Part shown: positions 11,799 to 31,800 of the stretch, in pieces | Layout of the letters: every line of letters begins with the position of its first letter | Numbering within the stretch: position 1 is the stretch's first letter | Source of the DNA: Lenisia limosa | Lineage: Eukaryota > Protista > Breviatea | Direction of reading: 5' to 3' | Assembly: GCA_001655205.1 (NCBI GenBank) | Contig: LPNZ01011617.1 | Span: 13,132 to 77,131 of the forward strand | Length of the DNA: 64,000 nt | The notes under the pieces: model-generated | What the model was told of the DNA's origin: nothing | Database searches by the model: none | What the model saw: the letters and a program-made list of their open reading frames with translations, nothing else | Translations under genes and position numbers: made by a program

Positions 11799-11819
11799 CA
11801 AAAAAAAAAGAATAAAAAA
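11799..11819 (-). terminator. RNA polymerase III oligo(T) terminator of the tRNA
   Basis: The minus strand reads ATTTTTTATTCTTTTTTTTT immediately 3' of the tRNA discriminator base. Confidence 0.75.
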
Positions 11820-11820
11820 T

Positions 11821-11893
11821 TGCCGACTCCCGGGATCGATCCGGGGACCTTACGATCTTCAGTCGTACGCTCTNNNNNNNNNNACATGCTCTC
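11821..11893 (-). tRNA. trnF-GAA: tRNA-Phe(GAA); 5' ~20 nt hidden in the N-gap
   Basis: Minus strand AGAGCG TACGA CT GAA GA TCGTA AGGTC CCCGG ATCGATC CCGGG AGTCGGC A shows the anticodon stem-loop, T-arm and 3' acceptor strand. The 5' coordinate is estimated. Confidence 0.9.
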
Positions 11894-11925
11894 CAATCAG
11901 AATGCCGATCGTGAACAAAAAATTT

Positions 11926-13912
11926 CTAGTGGCTTCGGTACTCTTAAAGGCGGATTGGTGAGCCTTGACCCACCGGATGGCGGGGAGGCTATCTAGGCGC
12001 CTACAAGCCTGGGAAATGGCCAGCGAAGGCGGCGTTCCTAGGGTGGGGTGACGTAGTCATGGCGTCATTGACGGCGCTCAATTACCCTGTTGTCACAGTG
12101 GATTGTAACTAGAGCTGTCGGTGGGTATTAGGATGGCGTGGAGGATAGTTAGTCCTTCAGTTGCGTATATTGATGCTTCCATACTCGGTGGAGTGGATCT
12201 TGAAATTTCAATTTTCAGCTTTGGGATGAATATTCTATATCCTGTTTTACCCGATGTGGTGAGGGAACCGTCCGTGAAAAAGTCAACCGTTGCTGCTGCG
12301 GAGACAATCGGAATGAGAGGTGGGGGTGGATCGGGAGGAGGAGATGGCCTGTAGTGGGGCGCGATTCTTCCCTTATACTCCGAGGGGAGAGGCTTATGTT
12401 CTAGTAGCTCGAGAATCTTTGAGCATCGCCAACAACCGTGCGGACCTTCTGGCCAAGAAGGCGACATCGGGTCAAGGGGTCGAAGTAAGGGAACCACATC
12501 CTCTACCTCCTGACCGAATCACAAGGATCCCTCATCCTGTACTCATCATCACTGGAGGTCTCACCAGAAGGGACCCCAGGTCCGACGACCAGGGCCTTCT
12601 GCCTTGGTCACGCTTCCAGGACAGCGGAAGCTCACAGCCACCGGCTCCNNNNNNNNNNNNNNNNNNNNNNNNNNNNNNNNNNNNNNNNNNNNNNNNNNNN
12701 NNNNNNNNNNNNNNNNNNNNNNNNNNNNNNNNNNNNNNNNNNNNNNNNNNNNNNNNNNNNNNNNNNNNNNNNNNNNNNNNNNNNNNNNNNNNNNNNNNNN
12801 NNNNNNNNNNNNNNNNNNNNNNNNNNNNNNNNNNNNNNNNNNNNNNNNNNNNNNNNNNNNNNNNNNNNNNNNNNNNNNNNNNNNNNNNNNNNNNNNNNNN
12901 NNNNNNNNNNNNNNNNNNNNNNNNNNNNNNNNNNNNNNNNNNNATTGGCCCGTCCATCAAGACCATGATCATGGATGCGCTCCTATTCCCAGCTCCGGAG
13001 ACCAAGAAGAGAGCCATTTCGGCTTGCCGCGACCCCGTTGGCCTTTCTCGCTTGCCACCAGCAGTCCCTCGTCCAGGAATAAAGCTCCCCTTTTCAGTCA
13101 CACCGGAGGCCTGGCTGCAGGAATCTGCCCTTGCCTCTCAAGGAGGACATGAGATCCCTTCTCGACTCCAAGGCACCGCTGCCAAATGCCCCTCCGGGTC
13201 TGGCAAACCCGCTGTGACCTCTTGGAGGAGGCTGGCCCGCCCAACAGACCAGTTGCGGTCCCTGAAAGCCCGTCCGTCACCATGGACACCATCGTCACCT
13301 TGATCCCTGGGCCCTCGCCAACACCTGTCCAACCATTGTCGTACTCCCTATCACCTTCATTGTCACCTTCGCCACCCCCATCACCTCCAATTCCTTGACC
13401 TCTATCGCGCCGCCTCCGACCCCGGACACCCACGGACTTCGACTTTGACATCGCCAGGGGGGTCATCACGGGCAACCTCACCACCCACCCGATCATGACC
13501 TTCCATGGCCCTATATGTCCGTCGTTCCGGGAGTACCTGGGCTTATCTCACCTCACTAACCTCAACCATGCTACTTCACCTGCGAAACTATCAAGGACCC
13601 CCTCTCGTCCCCCGGAAACAACAGCCCGGACACCCAAACTCTCCTTGGCAATGCCCACAAGAGCCCTGAGCCCCGGCTTGCTAACCTCTCAATGCACTAC
13701 GCGCTACAGATCCCCACATACGCAATCTATACTGGCACAAACGAATTCATACCCAGGCTGGTATGTTTTGTCCAGTACATTTGGCACGGTTAAGTGTTCA
13801 TCGAGGCGTTGCCAACCTCCACTCATGAAAATTAATCTTCCACCAGTCAAATAGTGGTGGAAACTCTTGTTGACAGTTGTTTTTGTTTTCAGAAGAAAAA
13901 AAAAGAAAAAAA
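11926..13912 (+). mobile_element. 5'-truncated, 5'-inverted non-LTR retrotransposon (RNase H + C-terminal CCHC-like region, A-rich tail), decayed
   Basis: RNase H FFTDGS (12262-12282), HCDN and IRWVKAH (11959-11979) lie on the minus strand. Their continuation SIANNRADLLAK lies on the plus strand (12422-12457). CPS...NH.YFTC at ~13515-13590, stop ~13793, A-rich tail 13891-13912. There are frameshifts and an internal N-gap. Confidence 0.8.
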
Positions 13913-22434: not shown

Positions 22435-25400
22435 TCATGAATGAGTAACAAGAATGGTCTCTCTGACGTTACTCTGCCCATCCGTGTACTCTTCAGCAAC
22501 TTGGCAGGTCATGTTCTGAATAATTAACATTTGATCTGGCTCAAACTTCAATCTCAAAAGCTAGGTTGTTCAAATACACCAACCTGTTCCTTGGCTTTTT
22601 TGGCCAAAAGAGCAGTGTTACCACCAAGACCGAAATAGTAACGCTTTGCTCCAAAAAAAGCAGACCCGGACGGTTTCATTGTTCCCTTCACCGCCTGGTT
22701 GTAAAAGGTATTTCTAACAAACCCAATAGCAAGAACCAAGGCCCAAATTAGAAATTCAACAAACAGCCAACCTTCATAAGAGCTGGAAGGCTGGATATCG
22801 AGTAGATCGTGTCGGTTGACAAAATATAGTCATAACCTAAACGGTAAGTAAAAAGCGAATTCTAAAATAAGCCAAAAAGCAGACCTTCAAACGCATTCTG
22901 CATCACGAGCTTATCAAAGAAATTCCAGTCCCCGCTGATAAAACGAGCATTGCCAACTTGCTGTCTGAAAGATAAAATGTAGGTGAACTGCTTTTTTGCT
23001 ATGAGTAGTCTAGTTTTTCAAAGATAACATGGATACATTTTTATTCGTTCATTCAATTTGAGATTTCGTCTTGTTCTTTCATCTCAACGTTATTTTTATT
23101 CTGCGCTCTCTTTGAGAAATTAGGAGCCTGGTCGAAGCCATGGGAGTATATAATCTAAGCATGGGGAAACATGGGTCACCCTTGCAAAATTTGGAGACAT
23201 TTCAAGTGGAGTGGCTCGGATGCAGCCGCTATTTTGCAGAATCAAATATTTCAATGCTTAGATGAAAGACTAGTACTTTGTTTCACTCAGCTTTTTGAAC
23301 TTTGGGGCTAAAAGCGAGATGAGATGTGCACCGTTTGGATATAATGCTACTAACCTCTCTACTCCCCGTAAAAAACTGTTTAATTGAATAAAACTTGCAT
23401 TTCCGAGAAGGAAGGCTCGAGAGAGCAAGCCAGCATTTGATGGATTTAGATATTTTCTTCATTTGATGGGGCAAATTACTGATTTCTCGACGTTCAATGC
23501 ATCTCTTTCTCTTTCCTCTAAATGTTTGTATATTTCAACAACAATCAATTTAGAGAGCAAAGGATAGAGATCAGGCGCACCCGAAAAAGAAAAATGAGAG
23601 ATCACTTCAAACTTGTACAAGAACCTAAAAAGATCGATGCACATCTCAATATTGAATTATATAAGCCGCTCTTAGGAAGGCCTATTCTTCGATTATTAAT
23701 CCGTTGATCCGAGACAGTTTTCCAAACTCTTGTGTATCCCAAGTTTCTTTTGCGTCAGAAAGTAAACGCTTTTCTTACCATTAGGAGATTTATATTTTTA
23801 GTAAATAGAAAGGGGTCGGGAAAGGACCGTTAAGTCACATTCCCAGAAGTAGAAATTCTAGTCAGGAGATGCCAATGAAATGACAATCCCAACCCTTTCC
23901 GCCTCTGGAGTGCAATGAGGGTTCCGGGATTGGCCTCCTTGCCTGAGTGATCACAAGGATGGCTGACCAAGGTAAGTTTACGGTCTGGCGAAATGACCAC
24001 ACTGAAAAACCAGGGTTTGTGCCCAGGGAAAAATACGGATTATTTTATCTATTTTGTGTTCTGAAGGTAGAGACGAGTAAATCCGAATTTTGGTGGCTAT
24101 TCTCTAGGAAGCCATGGTCGCAGGTTTGTGGTGAGTTAGGATACATACACCCGCTACAGATCAGATGATAGAGTATCAAGTGTAAGATGAGCGCAGAGGG
24201 CCTTTGAGCCTGAAAACCCCCCTTATATTGGGTTGAACTTATTGGGTTATGCTTTGTTTTTTAAAATCCAAATGTTAATAAAACGTCAGCAAAATGCTAA
24301 GCTTCCTTTGTCCACATATATATTGTATATTTGATATAATATTTTACACCCCAGTATCATTTCAAGGGTCCCTGCTGACAATGTATTGTGCTCTTTCAGG
24401 TTCTTCAACATCGTTGGCACTGTTAACCTTGACAAGACCTCTTCGTTCTGCGTATTAAAGCGGAGGGTGAAAGTGTATTATATATGCTGTTATATATTTT
24501 TTTTGTAACAATTCCTTTTTTTTTTGAAATTTTCCTAAAACTAGTAAAACTGTCAAAAAAAAAACTAGTTAATTTGATAAAATCCTAATTTAATCGCACT
24601 AATACATATGATATGATATGATGCGTAAGCATATAACAAAAAGAAAAGCTCAAAACTGTTTTTTATTAGATTCGACTGTTTTAGCCATAATATGACATTA
24701 TCACTCCCCAACATACATAATCTTGAAAGTCAACCATTGCACCTTTCAACAGAGCATAAATACCAGGAATACCAGCTCCACAGCCCAGCTACAGAGTAAG
24801 AAGATAGACTATTCATAATGTTACAGTAAATAATATTGGCTCTCTGACATCTAAAACACGTTTCCCTTCGAAGTCCACTTTCTTCTTGTCCATCCACTCG
24901 ACCAGGTCAACAGCGCACTCCCAAATCTTGAAACCCCCTGGAGAGTCAACAAAGAACTACTATTTGGGTAACAATCGTAATGTCTGCTCCTTCCCCTAAT
25001 CCTTGCCAACCCTCATAAACGCCTGGTTTCAGATCAGAGGTTTTGAGTAATCCTGCCAGGTCTGTTTCAGCCTGGAGACGGTGGATGTCCGAGACCTGAT
25101 TAATTAGGAATGCTGAGTGATCAATTAGGAATAATGCTGAGTGGTTCTGATCAGTCACTCCTTATCTTCGGATTCACAGCAAAAGCATGTGATGAAAATA
25201 TAAGTGGCAGCTATTCTTCCAAACAACAGTATCTAACAAGTGATGGAGTCAACAATAAATGTAAAACATATATGGTACATCAATTGGATCAAAGACATTT
25301 TGCTCTTCCTTTTCACATAATAAGGTCAACCCCGCACTCTTTTCAAAACAACAGCGCCATTGTTGAACTTCAAGTCATCAAACGTCAGGGTCTATGTTGT

Positions 25401-25876: not shown

Positions 25877-28800
25877 AGTTTTCGAGGCTGGTGGGGAGTC
25901 GTGTGGAGGGGGAAGAGGGGTCTGAGGGGTGACCACCAGGTTGCCACCAGGACACTGCCAGGACACACACAAGCCAGGGCCAGAAGAAACTGTATGCCAC
26001 GTGCCCGTGAAAAATAACGGATTTGAACAGGAATAATATTTTTTTTTTATTTTTTGGGAAATTTGAATCGCAAGCTGAGGAGGAGGAGATATAATAATCA
26101 AGGGTGTTTGAAGAAGGAATTACGGCAGAATGGAGGGCGAAGATGTTTGTGGAATTCCGTTTCTCGTTTCCTATATCTTTTCTACAAAGCCTCCTTCATC
26201 CCATTTGATTTAATTCTTTTGAATACATGGCATATACAGCGTAAAAAGCCCATACTGCCTTCCTTACCCCCCCCCCCCCNNNNNNNNNNNNNNNNNNNNN
26301 NNNNNNNNNNNNNNNNNNNNNNNNGCGAGAGAGTTGACTCAAGAATGTAGTTGGCGCGGTTATATTGCAAATCATGTTGTAAAGGGTAATATTTGAGATT
26401 TAATAACTCCATTCGCCCAAATGTGACGTTCTTTTTACAGCTGGTTGGGATTCGATAATACGAGGGCTTTGATGAGTCATACCCGATATTCCCATTAAAT
26501 TGAAAGTACTTGAAGTTTTCTAATATTTTATTCATACTAGGCGCCGACAGTAAATATGATGGTGCCACAAACAGTATTGAAGAGAAGAATGAAGCACCAA
26601 GAGAAAATATTATAGAAGAAAATGTCGTGGAAGAAGTGAAAGAAGAAGAGGTGAAAGCAGAAGAAGAAAAAGAAGTTTCAAAAGAAGTTCTCGTTAAAGA
26701 AAACACAGTTGACATTCAAGACGGTCCGGAAGAACAGGCAGCAGCAAGAAAAATGCAAAGCGCCTGGAGAAGGAAGCAGTCCAGATCCGAGGGTAAGGAT
26801 GAAGAAGAGATTACAAGTAATAATGATAGAGATATTAAGGATGAAGAGACTAAAGAAGAAGGGAAAGAAGATGTGAAGGAAGAGGTGAAGGAGGTAAAAG
26901 AAGAAGAGAAAGAAATGGAAGAAGAGGCGAAAGAAGAGTTGAAAGAAGGGGTGAAAGAAGAAGAGGTAGAAGAGGTGAAAGCAGAAGANNNNNNNNNNNN
27001 NNNNNNNNNNNNNNNNNNNNNNNNNNNNNNNNNNNNNNNNNNNNNNNNNNNNAGCAGCAGCAAGAAAAATGCAAAGCGCTTGGAGAAGAAAGCAGTCCAG
27101 ATCACAGGGTAAAGATGAAGAAGAGATTACAGGTAAGAATGAAAGGGATATTAAGGATGAAGAGACTAAAGAAGAAGGGAAACAAGAGGTGAAGGAGTTA
27201 AAAGAAGAAGAGAAAGAGGAAATGGAAGAAGAGGTAAAAGAAGAATTGAAAGAAGAAGCGAAAGAAGAGGTGAAAGAAGAAGCGAAAGAAGAAGTGAAAG
27301 AAGAAAGAAAAGAAGAACTGAAAGAAAAGGTAAAGGAAGAAGAGAAAGGTGTAGAATTGAAAGAAGAGGAGAAAGAAGAGTTGAAAGAAGGGGTGAAAGA
27401 AGAAGAGGTAGAAGAGGTGAAAGAAGAAGAGGTAGAAGAGGTGAAAGCAGAAGATAAAGAAGTTTCAAAAGAAGTTCTCGTCAAAGAAAACACAGTTGAC
27501 ATTCAAGACGGTCCGGAAGAACAGGCAGCAGCAAGAAAAATGCAAAGCGCTTGGAGAAGAAAGCAGTCAAGATCACAGGGTAAAGATGAAGAAGAGATTA
27601 CAGGTAAGAATGAAAGGGATATTCAGGATGAAGAGACTAAAGAAGAAGGGAAACACGAGGTGAAGGAGTTAAAAGAAGAAGAGAAAGAAGAAATGGAAGA
27701 AGAGGTTAAAGAAGAATTGAAAGAAGAAGCGAAAGAAGAGGTGAAAGAAGAAGCGAAAGAAGAAGTGNNNNNNNNNNNNNNNNNNNNNNNNNNNNNNNNN
27801 NNNNNNNNNNNNNNNNNNNNNNNNNNNNNNNNNNNNNNNNNNNNNNNNNNNNNNNNNNNNNNNNNNNNNNNNNNNNNNNNNNNNNNNNNNNNNNNNNNNN
27901 NNNNNNNNNNNNNNNNNNNNNNNNNNNNNNNNNNNNNNNNNNNNNNNNNNNNNNNNNNNNNNNNNNNNNNNNNNNNNNNNNNNNNNNNNNNNNNNNNNCA
28001 GATCACAGAGTAAAGATGAAGAAGAGATGACAAGTAAGAATGGAGATATTAAGGATGAAGAGACTAAAGAAGATGAGAAAGAAGAGTTGAAGGAGGTAAA
28101 AGAAGAGGAGAAAGAAGAGTTGAAAGAAGGGGTGAAGGTGAAAGAAGAGTTGAAAGAAGAAGAGGTAGAAGAAAGAAAAGAAGAACTGAAAGAAAAGGTA
28201 AAGGAAGTAGAGAAAGGTGTAGAAGGGAAAGAAGAGGAAAAAGAAGAGAAGAAAGAAGAGGTGAAAGAAGAGTTGAAAGAAGAAGAGGTAGAAGANNNNN
28301 NNNNNAAGATCACAGGGTAAGGATGAAGAAGAGATTACAAGTAAGAATAGAGATATTAAGGATGAAGAGACAAAAGAAGAAGAGAAAGAAGAGGTGAAGG
28401 AAGAGGAGAAGGAGGTAAAGGAAGAAGAGAAAGAAGAAGTGAAAGAAAAGAAAGAAGAGGAAGTGAAAGAAGAAGTGAAAGAAAAGAAAGATGAGGAAGT
28501 GAAAGAAGAAGTGAAAGAAGAAGTGAAAGAAGAAGCGAAAGAAAAGAAAGAAGAAGAAGAAGTGGAAGAAGAAGCGAAAGAAGAGGTGAAAGAAGAGGTG
28601 AAAGAAGAACTGAAGGAAGAACTGAAGGAAGAAGTGGAAGAAGAAGAAGTGAAAAAGAAAGAAGTGAAAGAAGAGATGAAAGAAGAAGTGAAAGAAGAAG
28701 TGAAGGCAGAAGTGAAGGAAGAAGTGAAAGAAGAACGGAAGAAAGAAGAGAAAGAAGCTACCTCAGTTGCATTTGATGACTTTGAAGAGGAACAGACAAT

Positions 28801-31800
28801 AGAGAAAGACGGAGAGAAGATAGAAAAGCAAGATAAGGTGAAAGAGAAGGTTGAAGAGCAGGATGATGAAATTTGTGATGACTTTGAAGAAGATGAAGAT
28901 AATGAAGAAGAAGTGAAGGAAGAGATGAAGGAAGAGGTGAAAGAAGAGGTGAAGGAAGAAGTGAAAGAAGAAGAAGTGAAAAAGGAAGAGGTGGAAGAAG
29001 AGGTGAAAGAAGAAGTGAAAGAAGAAATGAAAGAAGAAGTGGAAGAAGAAGTGAAAGAGGAAATGAAAGAGGAAGTGGAAGTGAAAGAAGAAGTGAAAAA
29101 AATGAAAGAGGAAGTGGAAGTGAAAGAAGAAGTGAAAAAAATGAAGGAAGAAGTGAAAGAAGAAGTTAAAGAAGAAGTTAAAGAAGAAATGGAGGAAGTG
29201 AAAGAAGAAGTGACAGAAGTAGTAAAAGAAAAAGTGAAAGAAGAAATGAAAGAAGAAGTGAAAAAGGAAGTGAAAGAAGAAGGGAAAGAAGTGAAGGAAG
29301 AAGTGAAAGAAGAAGTGAAAGAAGTGAACGAAGAAGTGAACGAAGAAGTAAAAGAAGAAGTAAAAGAAGAAATGAAGGAGGAAGTGAAGGAAGAAGTGAA
29401 GGAAGAAGCGAAAGAAGAAATGAAGGAGGAAGTGAAGGAAGAAGTGAAGGAAGAAGTTAAAGAAGAAGTGAAGGAAGAAGTGAAAGAAGAAGTGAAAGAA
29501 GAAGTGAAGGAAGAAGTGACAGAAGAAGTGAAGGAAGAAGATAAGACTAAAGAAGAACTAAGGAAAAAAGACAAGGAAGAAAAGGGAGCACAAGAAGAGA
29601 AGAGGTATCTTGAAGAAGATAATGAAGAAGGATTTGAGTCAGACAGTTCAGAAGCGTCAGTATCATCTGTAGTCCATCACCCCCCTGAGCACCAGGCTAA
29701 GTCTCCTTCATCTCCTTGGTGAGTTCTTATTCAATTGGAAATGTAATATTTTTTTAACCTTAATAATATGAATTGGCCCAACCATCTTGCGGTCTTTTTT
29801 CAGGGAGTTGTTGACTTTTTCAGTTCCAAGTCGCCTACACCCCAGCATTCCCGCTCTCCTTCAAGGTATGAAGGAGAATAAGTGTAATAACAGTGTTGTT
29901 TTTCAAGTGGAATTTATTTACATGTTTCAGGTCATCTCAACACTCCCGCTCCCCCTCACCATCAAGGTAACATTGTGCTATTTGTTGTTGGTGTGGTACC
30001 GAAATAACCAAACTGATAGTTTAGGACACACTCTCCCTCCAACTCCCCATCTCCCTCACGGTTGGCCAACAAGAATAGTAATATTTTGTACCCGATCAAG
30101 CACTTATAGTTCAGGTCACAAAGATCATCCAGATCACCATCTCCAACACGGTAAACTGACATTTCTTTTTCTGGCTATTCTTTAACCTAATATAGTTCCC
30201 CTCGTTCGAGGTCGGCATCACCTTCTCCTCGGTAATGAAAAAGATGATTTGACATATACTCAAGTTTACTAGACAAGTTTTCAATATCCGCCCAGTTGAT
30301 TTGTTTGAGCCATATTCATATCTCAGATTGCAGTCCCCTCGTCGCACTCCCGAGCATAGGGAGCCGCCTTCTAACGAGACAACCCCGCAGCAGGTATGGC
30401 ATGTCAGAAATTGGATTTGAAGATCTTCTTGACATTGGAGTTCAGCATATTAACGACATAGACTGGAGTACGTCCGGTGCCCAGTTTAGAAAAACTGCAC
30501 ACCCCTCCCAGTCAATCCCCAAATGGTGCGAATTATATTTGAGCCCAACTCTGCAATTTCTTTGACACTCCCGCTAGCCCACCCTCATACTCAAGACGAT
30601 CTCACCCCCCGGGACCCGGCAGCTGTGCTTTCGGAAGCTGAGGCCGAGGCAAAACCAAAACCTCCAAAAGTGAGACACGTACAAAAAAGAAAAAGTATAC
30701 ATATGATATGATATATTAGATTGGAAAACTGTCTTATCATGTCGTGTTAACACAATCGTAGCAAAAGCGGAAGGGACCCTCGCGTCGTCAGCTGAGGAAA
30801 CAGCAAGAAGAAGCGGATGCAAGAAGGTCTCAAGTATGGACGGTTTTTATACCAGTTTTGCTTGGCCCTCTCCTGAACAATGCTATTCTGGGCTCTATGT
30901 TGTTGTTCTTGTCAAAAATGTTGTGCCTCAGCCATCTCTTTTTTTTTTGGGGGGTGGGTGGTCCAGTATTAATATGTGTCTTAATTAGCTTCTTACCGCA
31001 ACCTTTGAGTTATTTTTCAGATTTTCCCATTTTACTTTCTCAGGTTACAACAATAACTCGGATTGCCGACAAGAACAGCTCACAACAAGCAGTATGGGGG
31101 CTTCATGGCTGTAAATCCAAGCATCAAGGGCGGCACTGACCCCCCAGCGAACACCCTCACGTAAGGTGCTCAAGGAAGAGGTCAAAAGAGAAGTTCTCAG
31201 TGAGCTACTTAACGAGCTGCGTTCCGAACTCAGAACCACGCAGCAGATTTATCGTGGTAAAAAACCACCTAAAAAAGTATGCGTAGTCGCAAACTACGAG
31301 GCTTCAATTACATATCGATAGGTTCTGATCTGATCGTTTAGCGTCCAACTACCCCTGGACAAGACATGGAAAGGAAAGAGGTATTATGTCACCACTTATC
31401 CCGTTTCCACCATCCCACTAAATCCTCACACCTGCAGCGCGCGAAGACTCCGAGAAGAGCCGCCTCCTGCACTCCCCGGTCCGGGCAAAACACACAATCG
31501 CCGCAAACCGTTCCAGCATCACGGCCGTCTCGGCCAGTGTCTGCTTCTTCGAGGCCGTCCCGCCCGGTGTCAGCGTCACGCTCGGGGTACGTGTTCGCTC
31601 ACTCCTTGTTCCAAACAATTTCGGAAGGGGCTTATTTTATTAGATACACCACGCCAAGACGCTTGAATCCGCTCCCGGCTGCACAGCAAGGATGGCAAAG
31701 TGCTATTCTGTAGGGGCGTGGGGCGTGGGGAAATATTAACAAATATTTACTTTTCAAGGTTACCTAATCGATCTGGCCTCTTTGGTGCCCCTCCACCACC

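Follow-up and report, generated by a model that had tools for sequence, protein, structure and literature searches.

A putative RNase H LINE family upstream of tRNA and 5S rRNA genes in the breviate Lenisia limosa

We analysed a stretch of 64,000 nucleotides of DNA from the breviate Lenisia limosa (GenBank assembly GCA_001655205.1, contig LPNZ01011617.1, positions 13,132 to 77,131 of the forward strand; from here on, the window), in which the remnant of a long interspersed nuclear element (LINE) lies next to a gene for tRNA-Phe. The window lies on contig C11617, which belongs to a draft assembly of 49 Mb in 11,727 contigs; other contigs are named in the same way. As described below, the remnant belongs to a family whose copies lie, in one orientation and at a similar distance, upstream of tRNA and 5S rRNA genes, i.e. 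of genes transcribed by RNA polymerase III (Pol III).

A tRNA-Phe gene and a decayed, partly inverted element copy

The following features were identified at the locus (positions are those of the window; ORF, open reading frame; UTR, untranslated region):

11814-11820, minus strand: 3' trailer of tRNA-Phe, by its match to contig C8394
11821-11873, minus strand: positions 21-73 of tRNA-Phe(GAA), by identity to the complete tRNA on C8394
11874-11883: assembly gap written as 10 N, with a probable real size of about 26-30 bp, of which 20 nt would be tRNA and 6-10 nt leader
11884-11929: leader of tRNA-Phe (spacer), ending in ...CTAG at the element junction and without match to any element copy
11930-12423, minus strand: inverted 5' segment of the LINE copy, in opposite orientation in three other copies
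12424-12648, plus strand: sense part with NNRADLLAKKA, the C-terminal motif of RNase H, and then the linker, by translation and 88-95% identity to other copies
12649-12943: assembly gap of 295 N, hiding the stretch that holds the putative CCHC finger in other copies
12944-13565, plus strand: sense part with the ORF end and the proximal 3' UTR, matched by 21 other copies
13568-13759, plus strand: 190-bp fragment of a second subfamily, from the linker between RNase H and CCHC finger
13760-13912, no strand: stretch ending in an A-rich run (13890-13912), which is not the tail of the family

The first-pass annotation of this DNA had placed a minus-strand tRNA-Phe gene beside the element. The gene is present. 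Positions 11814-11873 match C8394 at 100% identity along 60 bp, at a place where ARAGORN calls a complete 73-nt tRNA-Phe(GAA), which is followed by a 7-nt trailer, and the anticodon loop CTGAAGA can be read directly in the window sequence. What is preserved, however, is limited to tRNA positions 21-73, the 5' 20 nt having been lost in the 10-N gap; as the gene is interrupted by this gap, ARAGORN made no tRNA call in the window. At least 20 nt of tRNA-Phe are absent and, therefore, the two sides of the 10-N gap are not contiguous.

The tRNA-Phe leader contains GATCGTG at 11907-11913, a variant of a Pol III upstream motif that, in 10 of 13 other tRNA loci, begins at -30 to -34 from the mature 5' end. 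Provided that GATCGTG sits at the usual place of this motif, the 10-N gap would hide about 26-30 bp, and the edge of the element would lie about 50-56 bp upstream of tRNA-Phe. A gap much larger than about 25 bp, which the first-pass annotation had named as a threat to its proposal of insertion at a set distance from the tRNA, is not indicated by this estimate. The window leader aligned marginally with the leader of tRNA-Phe on C8394, the same score being reached by 24 of 500 shuffles.

A search of the genome with 11926-12648 identified three copies, on C8394, C2893 and C10357, that carry the first ~400 bp in the opposite orientation and joined directly to the remainder; in these copies, the uninverted arrangement gives a single reading frame through the whole RNase H domain. 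In the window, the domain is split: the minus strand of 11930-12300, and more narrowly of 12096-12300, encodes its N-terminal part, and the plus strand at ~12430-12460 its C-terminal motif. The inverted segment 11930-12423 encodes the N-terminal two thirds of RNase H (TDGS...ATEG...WVKAHQ) together with ~95 bp further upstream. Position 11926 had been taken for the 5' edge of the element; base-by-base comparison with the three copies places there the junction between the flank and the inverted segment instead.

The junction of the inversion is exact to within 2 bp. The normal sequence at the junction reads ...GAAGCCA followed directly by TCACCAACAACCG, and in the normal order base 11930 abuts base 12424. 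In the window, the inverted arm ends with ...GAAGCCA at 11930 and the direct arm opens with CATCGCCAACAACCG at 12424, with an overlap of at most 2 bp. The order in the window is flank, inverted upstream segment and direct downstream segment, and the inverted arm meets the flank with the base that, in the normal order, stands immediately before the direct arm. Twin priming, a model for insertion of mammalian L1, leaves exactly this layout; the model was reportedly put forward by Ostertag and Kazazian in 2001. The window copy shares with twin-primed L1 copies the flank/inverted/direct order and the overlap of 0-2 bp at the junction, and differs from them in belonging to another LINE family in a protist host and in lacking microhomology at the priming site. 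The copy beside tRNA-Val on C9329 has the same inversion architecture with ~120 bp missing at the junction, giving inversions in two of the ~20 loci inspected.

We also considered a misoriented scaffold piece as the cause of the inversion. The normal order is not regained when the 765-bp piece between the two gaps is flipped and, therefore, a simple scaffolding error does not account for the inversion. A minus-strand 'CWRC...H' at ~12434-12396 was considered as the CCHC finger and rejected, as it is mostly the antisense of the plus-strand RNase H C-terminal motif.

The interval homologous to the 295-N gap is 298 bp on C8394, 265 bp on C2893 and 319 bp on C10357. These matching sizes in three copies indicate that both sides of the gap belong to one element and that the size estimate of the gap is reasonable. 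A reading frame drawn through the gap carries no meaning, since frameshifts occur there in the other copies as well.

The 21 copies that match 12944-13565 run on past the point at which the window diverges. Other copies extend ~330 bp past position 13565 and end with ...GATAAATACATTTTTTGTCCTTTCAAAA; the window copy is without these last ~330 bp of the family, including the terminus ...GTCCTTTCAAAA. Beyond the point of divergence, 13568-13759 is 87-94% identical to sequences on C4212, C9425, C6592, C10590 and C11034, in which the fragment stands after the RNase H frame and before a match to zf-RVT. A reading of 13568-13759 as an RNase H motif was rejected; the fragment is the linker that follows RNase H in a second subfamily, which belongs to the same LINE group. 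In a genome-wide search, 13760-13912 had no match elsewhere. The first-pass annotation had let the element extend to 13912, the end of the A-rich 'tail'. Because the family terminus is ...TTTCAAAA, the A-run at 13890-13912 is ruled out as a poly(A) tail, and 13566-13912 is not the 3' end of this element. In total, we conclude that the locus is a decayed stack composed of the leader, a twin-primed copy without its tail, a piece of an older copy and further DNA.

Copies of the family beside tRNA and 5S rRNA genes

The 25-mer at the 3' end of the family had 97 matches in the genome within 3 mismatches, compared to none for the reversed control. The copies share the 3' terminus described above, which ends in CAAAA and carries no A-tail, and they are truncated at the 5' end, with starts that can fall anywhere between the RNase H region and the final 20 nt.

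ARAGORN identified a tRNA gene on the 5' side of the element in 13 contigs besides the window. These tRNAs were typed as Phe, Asp, Pro, Leu, Ser, Asn, Gly (two), His, Arg (two), Val and Glu, and the 13 loci comprise 12 different anticodons. Five further tRNA loci, on C303, C2364, C3226, C6703 and C9482, were found when an independent table of tRNA genes was crossed with the coordinates of the element; this table is a sample, in which 63 of ~1900 rough candidates were scored and which contains 61 tRNA genes. Altogether, the family is present at 19 tRNA loci including that of the window, or 18 without it. A B-box-like match on C4212 was rejected as not tRNA-like.

The family is also present on the 5' side of 17 of 29 5S rRNA genes, in all cases head-to-head, and several of the contigs with these 17 genes had first been scored as lacking a tRNA. 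By our own arithmetic, based on ~150 mapped fragments in 49 Mb, ~0.2 of the 29 5S genes would be expected to have a fragment within 2 kb by chance. Moreover, 36 of the 37 associations with tRNA or 5S genes are head-to-head, with the 5' side of the element turned towards the gene's 5' end. At the five 5S loci with sequence, the element starts 50-61 bp upstream of the gene, just beyond a conserved block; at tRNA loci, the first recognisable element bases lie ~40-100 bp upstream, mostly at 55-75 bp. No copies were found downstream of these genes in the loci examined. The first-pass annotation had proposed, from the single insertion in the window, a LINE family that targets Pol III genes head-to-head from upstream. 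The 19 tRNA loci and 17 of 29 5S genes, with one exception in orientation, bear this out, and the copies are not distributed randomly with respect to tRNA and 5S genes. In total, we conclude that integration is specific in orientation and position upstream of two classes of Pol III genes that have different internal promoters.

The copies are stacked one inside another, and the shortest fragments, which are presumably the youngest, are nearest to the gene. On C5829, direct repeats of 11 bp and 7 bp flank copies, and on C8394 a repeat containing TGCTG(T) recurs around three stacked copies; all three cases were read by eye. These flanking direct repeats of 7-11 bp are apparent target duplications. 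The repeats around stacked copies indicate repeated insertion at one site, where the leader meets the preceding copy. All copies that we saw are dead, 5'-truncated remnants. The family has the hallmarks of target-primed reverse transcription.

The 5S rRNA genes, of which there are at least 29, are dispersed singly over different contigs, without tandem arrays or linkage to ribosomal DNA, and most of them are nearly identical. The sole exception in orientation is G000:C7964:21322-21629, a match with 3 mismatches; a second, divergent Pol III gene to its right could explain it.

Upstream of both tRNA and 5S genes there is a conserved block in which GAT(G/A)C(A/T)AG, located around -27 to -41, is followed by a T-run and then by C(C/T)GAAAT(ATCGA). 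In the 5S leader, which is conserved to about -50 at five loci, the block reads CCGATGCAAG at -27 to -36, followed by the T-run and then C(C/T)GAAATATCGA. In tRNA genes, a related motif is present at -30 to -41. Besides 11907-11913 in the window, the block was located at L043, L018, L023, L025, L027, L029, L033, L035, L040 and L050. The block looks like a Pol III upstream promoter element common to the tRNA and 5S genes of the host, and we found no description of such a block.

Predicted domains and class of the element

Direct matches of the family to the Pfam RNase_H profile were weak and below threshold (E 0.009-0.31) but lay at the correct N- and C-terminal positions of the profile. We built two related profiles from four natural copies each, A2 for the search of proteins and A1 for the search of the PDB. 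Against 1.84 billion proteins, A2 gave 12 non-self matches at E<1e-3; seven of the ten A2 matches that were scanned fit Pfam RNase_H in register, and six were above the cut-off (E 8e-8 to 1e-29). In hhalign, the match to RNase H had a probability of 95.7% and an E value of 1e-8. Moreover, all eight matches of A1 in the PDB are retroviral RNase H domains. Three other routes gave no match: Pfam assigned no family to the ORF pieces of the window itself, the element was missed when the genome was scanned with PF00075 and PF13456, and phmmer with one RNase H piece found nothing in the PDB. Altogether, the profile comparisons confirm the predicted RNase H of the family.

The best match to zf-RVT in Pfam had an E value of 1.5e-5 and 26.0 bits against a cut-off of 27.5, and weaker matches were found at five loci. 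In the frame of the C8394 copy, a C-x2-C-x12-H-x5-C motif lies directly before the residues that resume at 12944 in the window. Thus, the family is predicted to encode RNase H followed by a CCHC finger of the zf-RVT-like type. The first-pass annotation had attributed both domains to the window copy. The RNase H is upheld by the profile searches; the putative finger is present in other copies, and it cannot be read in the window copy itself, where its stretch falls in the 295-N gap.

A genome scan with PF00078 identified no reverse transcriptase (RT) linked to the family in this fragmented draft, in which absence is not proof; the matches were two loci of an unrelated AT-rich LINE, one long terminal repeat (LTR) element and one bacterial group II intron. 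The longest copy of the family stops ~95 bp upstream of RNase H, and a search for copies that reach further in the 5' direction gave short extensions only and no RT. Similarly, no copy was found that extends to the endonuclease or ORF1, and no search aimed at the endonuclease was made. The family is assigned to the LINEs because of the RNase H, the predicted finger, the common 3' end, the variable 5' truncation, the apparent target duplications and twin priming.

Probable targeting, rival explanations and related systems

We consider it very probable that the window contains an old, broken insertion and that the LINE family from which it comes uses target-primed reverse transcription to integrate at a set position upstream of Pol III genes. 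In the mechanism that we propose, the TFIIIB/TFIIIC-Pol III complex, which is common to tRNA and 5S genes, would position the integration machinery, and the nick would be made just beyond the upstream edge of the footprint of this complex. In the case of the window copy, the second DNA end would have been primed internally on the RNA, resulting in the inversion, and later deletions would have removed the 3' end of the copy and most of its older neighbour of the second subfamily. For TRE5-A of Dictyostelium, integration via the Pol III complex has been proposed (PMC5391098).

Several observations weigh against this interpretation. In the window, the distance between the copy and its own tRNA is hidden by the gap, no target duplication is readable, and the missing 3' end is unlike a fresh insertion. 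Among the other copies, a 3'-end match on C7964 faces a tRNA the wrong way and is 210 bp off, and the check for neighbouring genes covered about one third of the contigs that have a 3'-end match. Moreover, no RT, endonuclease or ORF1 of the family was found in the assembly, and the designation as a LINE rests on the 3' half together with the insertion signatures. Finally, the conserved motif at the junctions is also compatible with sequence-directed cutting.

The last point leads to the main rival explanation, according to which the endonuclease recognises the block itself (GAT[G/A]C[A/T]AG, T-run, CNGAAAT) and cuts beside it, in the way that LINEs specific for rDNA or snRNA genes find their targets, without any need for contact to a transcription factor. 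The block is common to 5S and tRNA genes and stops where the insertions start, and at several junctions ...TAG is followed by the T-run, as this explanation would have it. However, tRNA-Asp on C2893, tRNA-Asn on C5829 and tRNA-Leu on C7737 have no clear motif and yet carry insertions at similar distances. In addition, the junctions scatter over 10-30 bp, whereas sequence-specific LINEs insert at a single nucleotide, and newer copies enter the boundary between the leader and an older copy regardless of the local sequence. The targets without motif and the scatter of the junctions count against sequence-directed cutting, and we regard this explanation as rather unlikely.

A second rival explanation is passive accumulation, in which insertion is random and copies survive only in the harmless flanks of Pol III genes in a compact genome. 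Flanks of Pol III genes are classic 'safe havens' (PMC5006619), and it would fit with this explanation that the family is known from dead, 5'-truncated remnants. Selection alone, however, does not account for the same orientation in 36 of 37 associations, for the ~10-bp window of junctions at 5S genes, for repeated hits at one site with the same target repeat or for the absence of downstream copies in the loci examined, making passive accumulation highly improbable.

An artefact, in the form of misassembly at gaps, of segmental duplication of a unit of tRNA plus repeat, or of 'tRNAs' that are the heads of tRNA-derived short interspersed nuclear elements (SINEs) with a LINE tail, could draw on the gaps that bound the region in a draft of this fragmentation and on the identity of the window tRNA-Phe with that on C8394, but is extremely improbable given that the inversion lies inside contiguous sequence and is not undone by the flip described above, that the partners comprise 12 anticodons as well as 5S genes with unrelated flanks and differing truncation points, and that the tRNAs have canonical form and are directed away from the element, the reverse of SINE architecture. 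A tRNA-derived SINE was accordingly rejected on the grounds of orientation and tRNA integrity.

LINEs that target tRNA genes have been described only in dictyostelids, where the site of insertion is 40-54 bp upstream of tRNA genes for TRE5, downstream of them for TRE3, and upstream again for NLTR-A (2-6 bp) and NLTR-B (39-64 bp) (PMC5006619, PMC5911963). TRE5-A of Dictyostelium discoideum has its primary site at -47 (40-54), in a strictly kept orientation with its 5' end turned towards the tRNA gene's 5' end, and targets 5S genes at -35 to -39 (PMC5391098); TRE5 copies are 5'-truncated and clustered (PMC5391098, PMC5911963). Thus, the Lenisia family resembles TRE5-A in the orientation rule, the distance, the targeting of 5S genes and the 5'-truncated, clustered copies. 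By contrast, ORF2 of TRE5 has the order APE (apurinic/apyrimidinic endonuclease), then RT, then zinc finger, without RNase H, and TRE5 has an oligo(A) tail, whereas the Lenisia family has RNase H and a predicted CCHC finger and ends in ...CAAAA. The hosts also differ, an amoebozoan in the one case and a breviate in the other, and the likeness is drawn from placement and description.

The first-pass annotation had regarded an RNase H LINE at such a position as without precedent. It is not: NLTR-B of Polysphondylium pallidum and NLTR-A of Dictyostelium purpureum have RNase H downstream of RT and insert upstream of tRNA genes (PMC5006619, PMC5911963). The Lenisia family shares with NLTR-B, at 39-64 bp upstream, the RNase H and a similar position, and differs from NLTR-A, which inserts 2-6 bp upstream. 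In both NLTR elements, by description, RNase H stands in place of the zinc finger, whereas in the Lenisia family both domains are predicted. Moreover, 5S targeting is not described for the NLTR elements in PMC5006619 and PMC5911963.

The LTR elements Ty3, Ty1 and DGLT-A have in common with the Lenisia family the 'safe haven' logic and the dependence on the position of Pol III genes (PMC5911963). They differ from it in being integrase-based, in inserting at other distances and in having no such orientation rule. Among the Tx1-group LINEs are families specific for 5S genes or for those of small nuclear RNA (snRNA), which we mention as a lead. Utopia is a LINE found at the U2 snRNA gene (PMC4640811). 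The Tx1-group and Utopia LINEs are similar to the Lenisia family in being associated with genes for small RNAs, but they insert at one nucleotide inside the gene, and not in an upstream window of several bp at two unrelated types of genes. A literature search identified nothing on retroelements of breviates.

We tentatively suggest that the Lenisia family could be an undescribed LINE lineage with RNase H and CCHC finger, in which tethering to the Pol III pre-initiation complex evolved independently of Dictyostelium TRE5 and of NLTR. If so, breviates would be the third group of eukaryotes with Pol III-targeted retroelements, after yeasts and social amoebae, and the junctions of the element would trace the upstream limit of a conserved and new Pol III promoter block that tRNA and 5S genes of the host have in common. 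Targeting upstream of Pol III genes is a textbook route of survival for retroelements in compact genomes; to find the orientation rule, distance and range (tRNA plus 5S genes) known from dictyostelids again in a deep-branching organism related to animals and fungi would add one more example of convergence, and a domain set unlike that of TRE5 would show that this behaviour is not tied to one protein architecture. The insertions could also be read as a footprint, in that they would show the point on the DNA at which the Pol III complex ends and would direct attention to a block resembling an undescribed promoter element. Furthermore, the exact inversions carry the signature of twin priming beyond mammalian L1, and stacks of the element account for many of the gaps and contig breaks beside tRNA and 5S genes in the assembly.

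The scan for RTs also identified elements unrelated to the Pol III-targeting family. The only LINE-type RTs in the assembly belong to a second LINE family at L071 (C9306:9885-13460) and L072 (C11551:6648-9911), with a YTDD/YADD motif in the RT. This family is AT-rich, has Glu/Lys-rich ORFs and has no tRNA within 1.5 kb, making it a useful control for non-targeted LINEs. L073 (C10257:1-2989) carries part of an LTR retrotransposon of the Ty3/gypsy type, with ORFs that resemble protease and RT. At L070 (C6086:1-1148), a contig of 1.1 kb carries a bacterial-type group II intron RT, consistent with bacterial contamination of the assembly.

Elsewhere in the window, positions 26000-30000 have a strong purine skew (GC skew up to 0.85 and AT skew up to 0.68) and low-level similarity to the Glu/Lys-rich ORF region of the LINE on C9306. 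A U1 snRNA gene at 23817-23979 on the minus strand is the only Rfam match in the window and shows that the DNA is eukaryotic. At 23321-23607, ~200-500 bp past the 3' end of U1, a 110-bp stretch is 86% identical to sequence beside tRNA-Glu on C9383.

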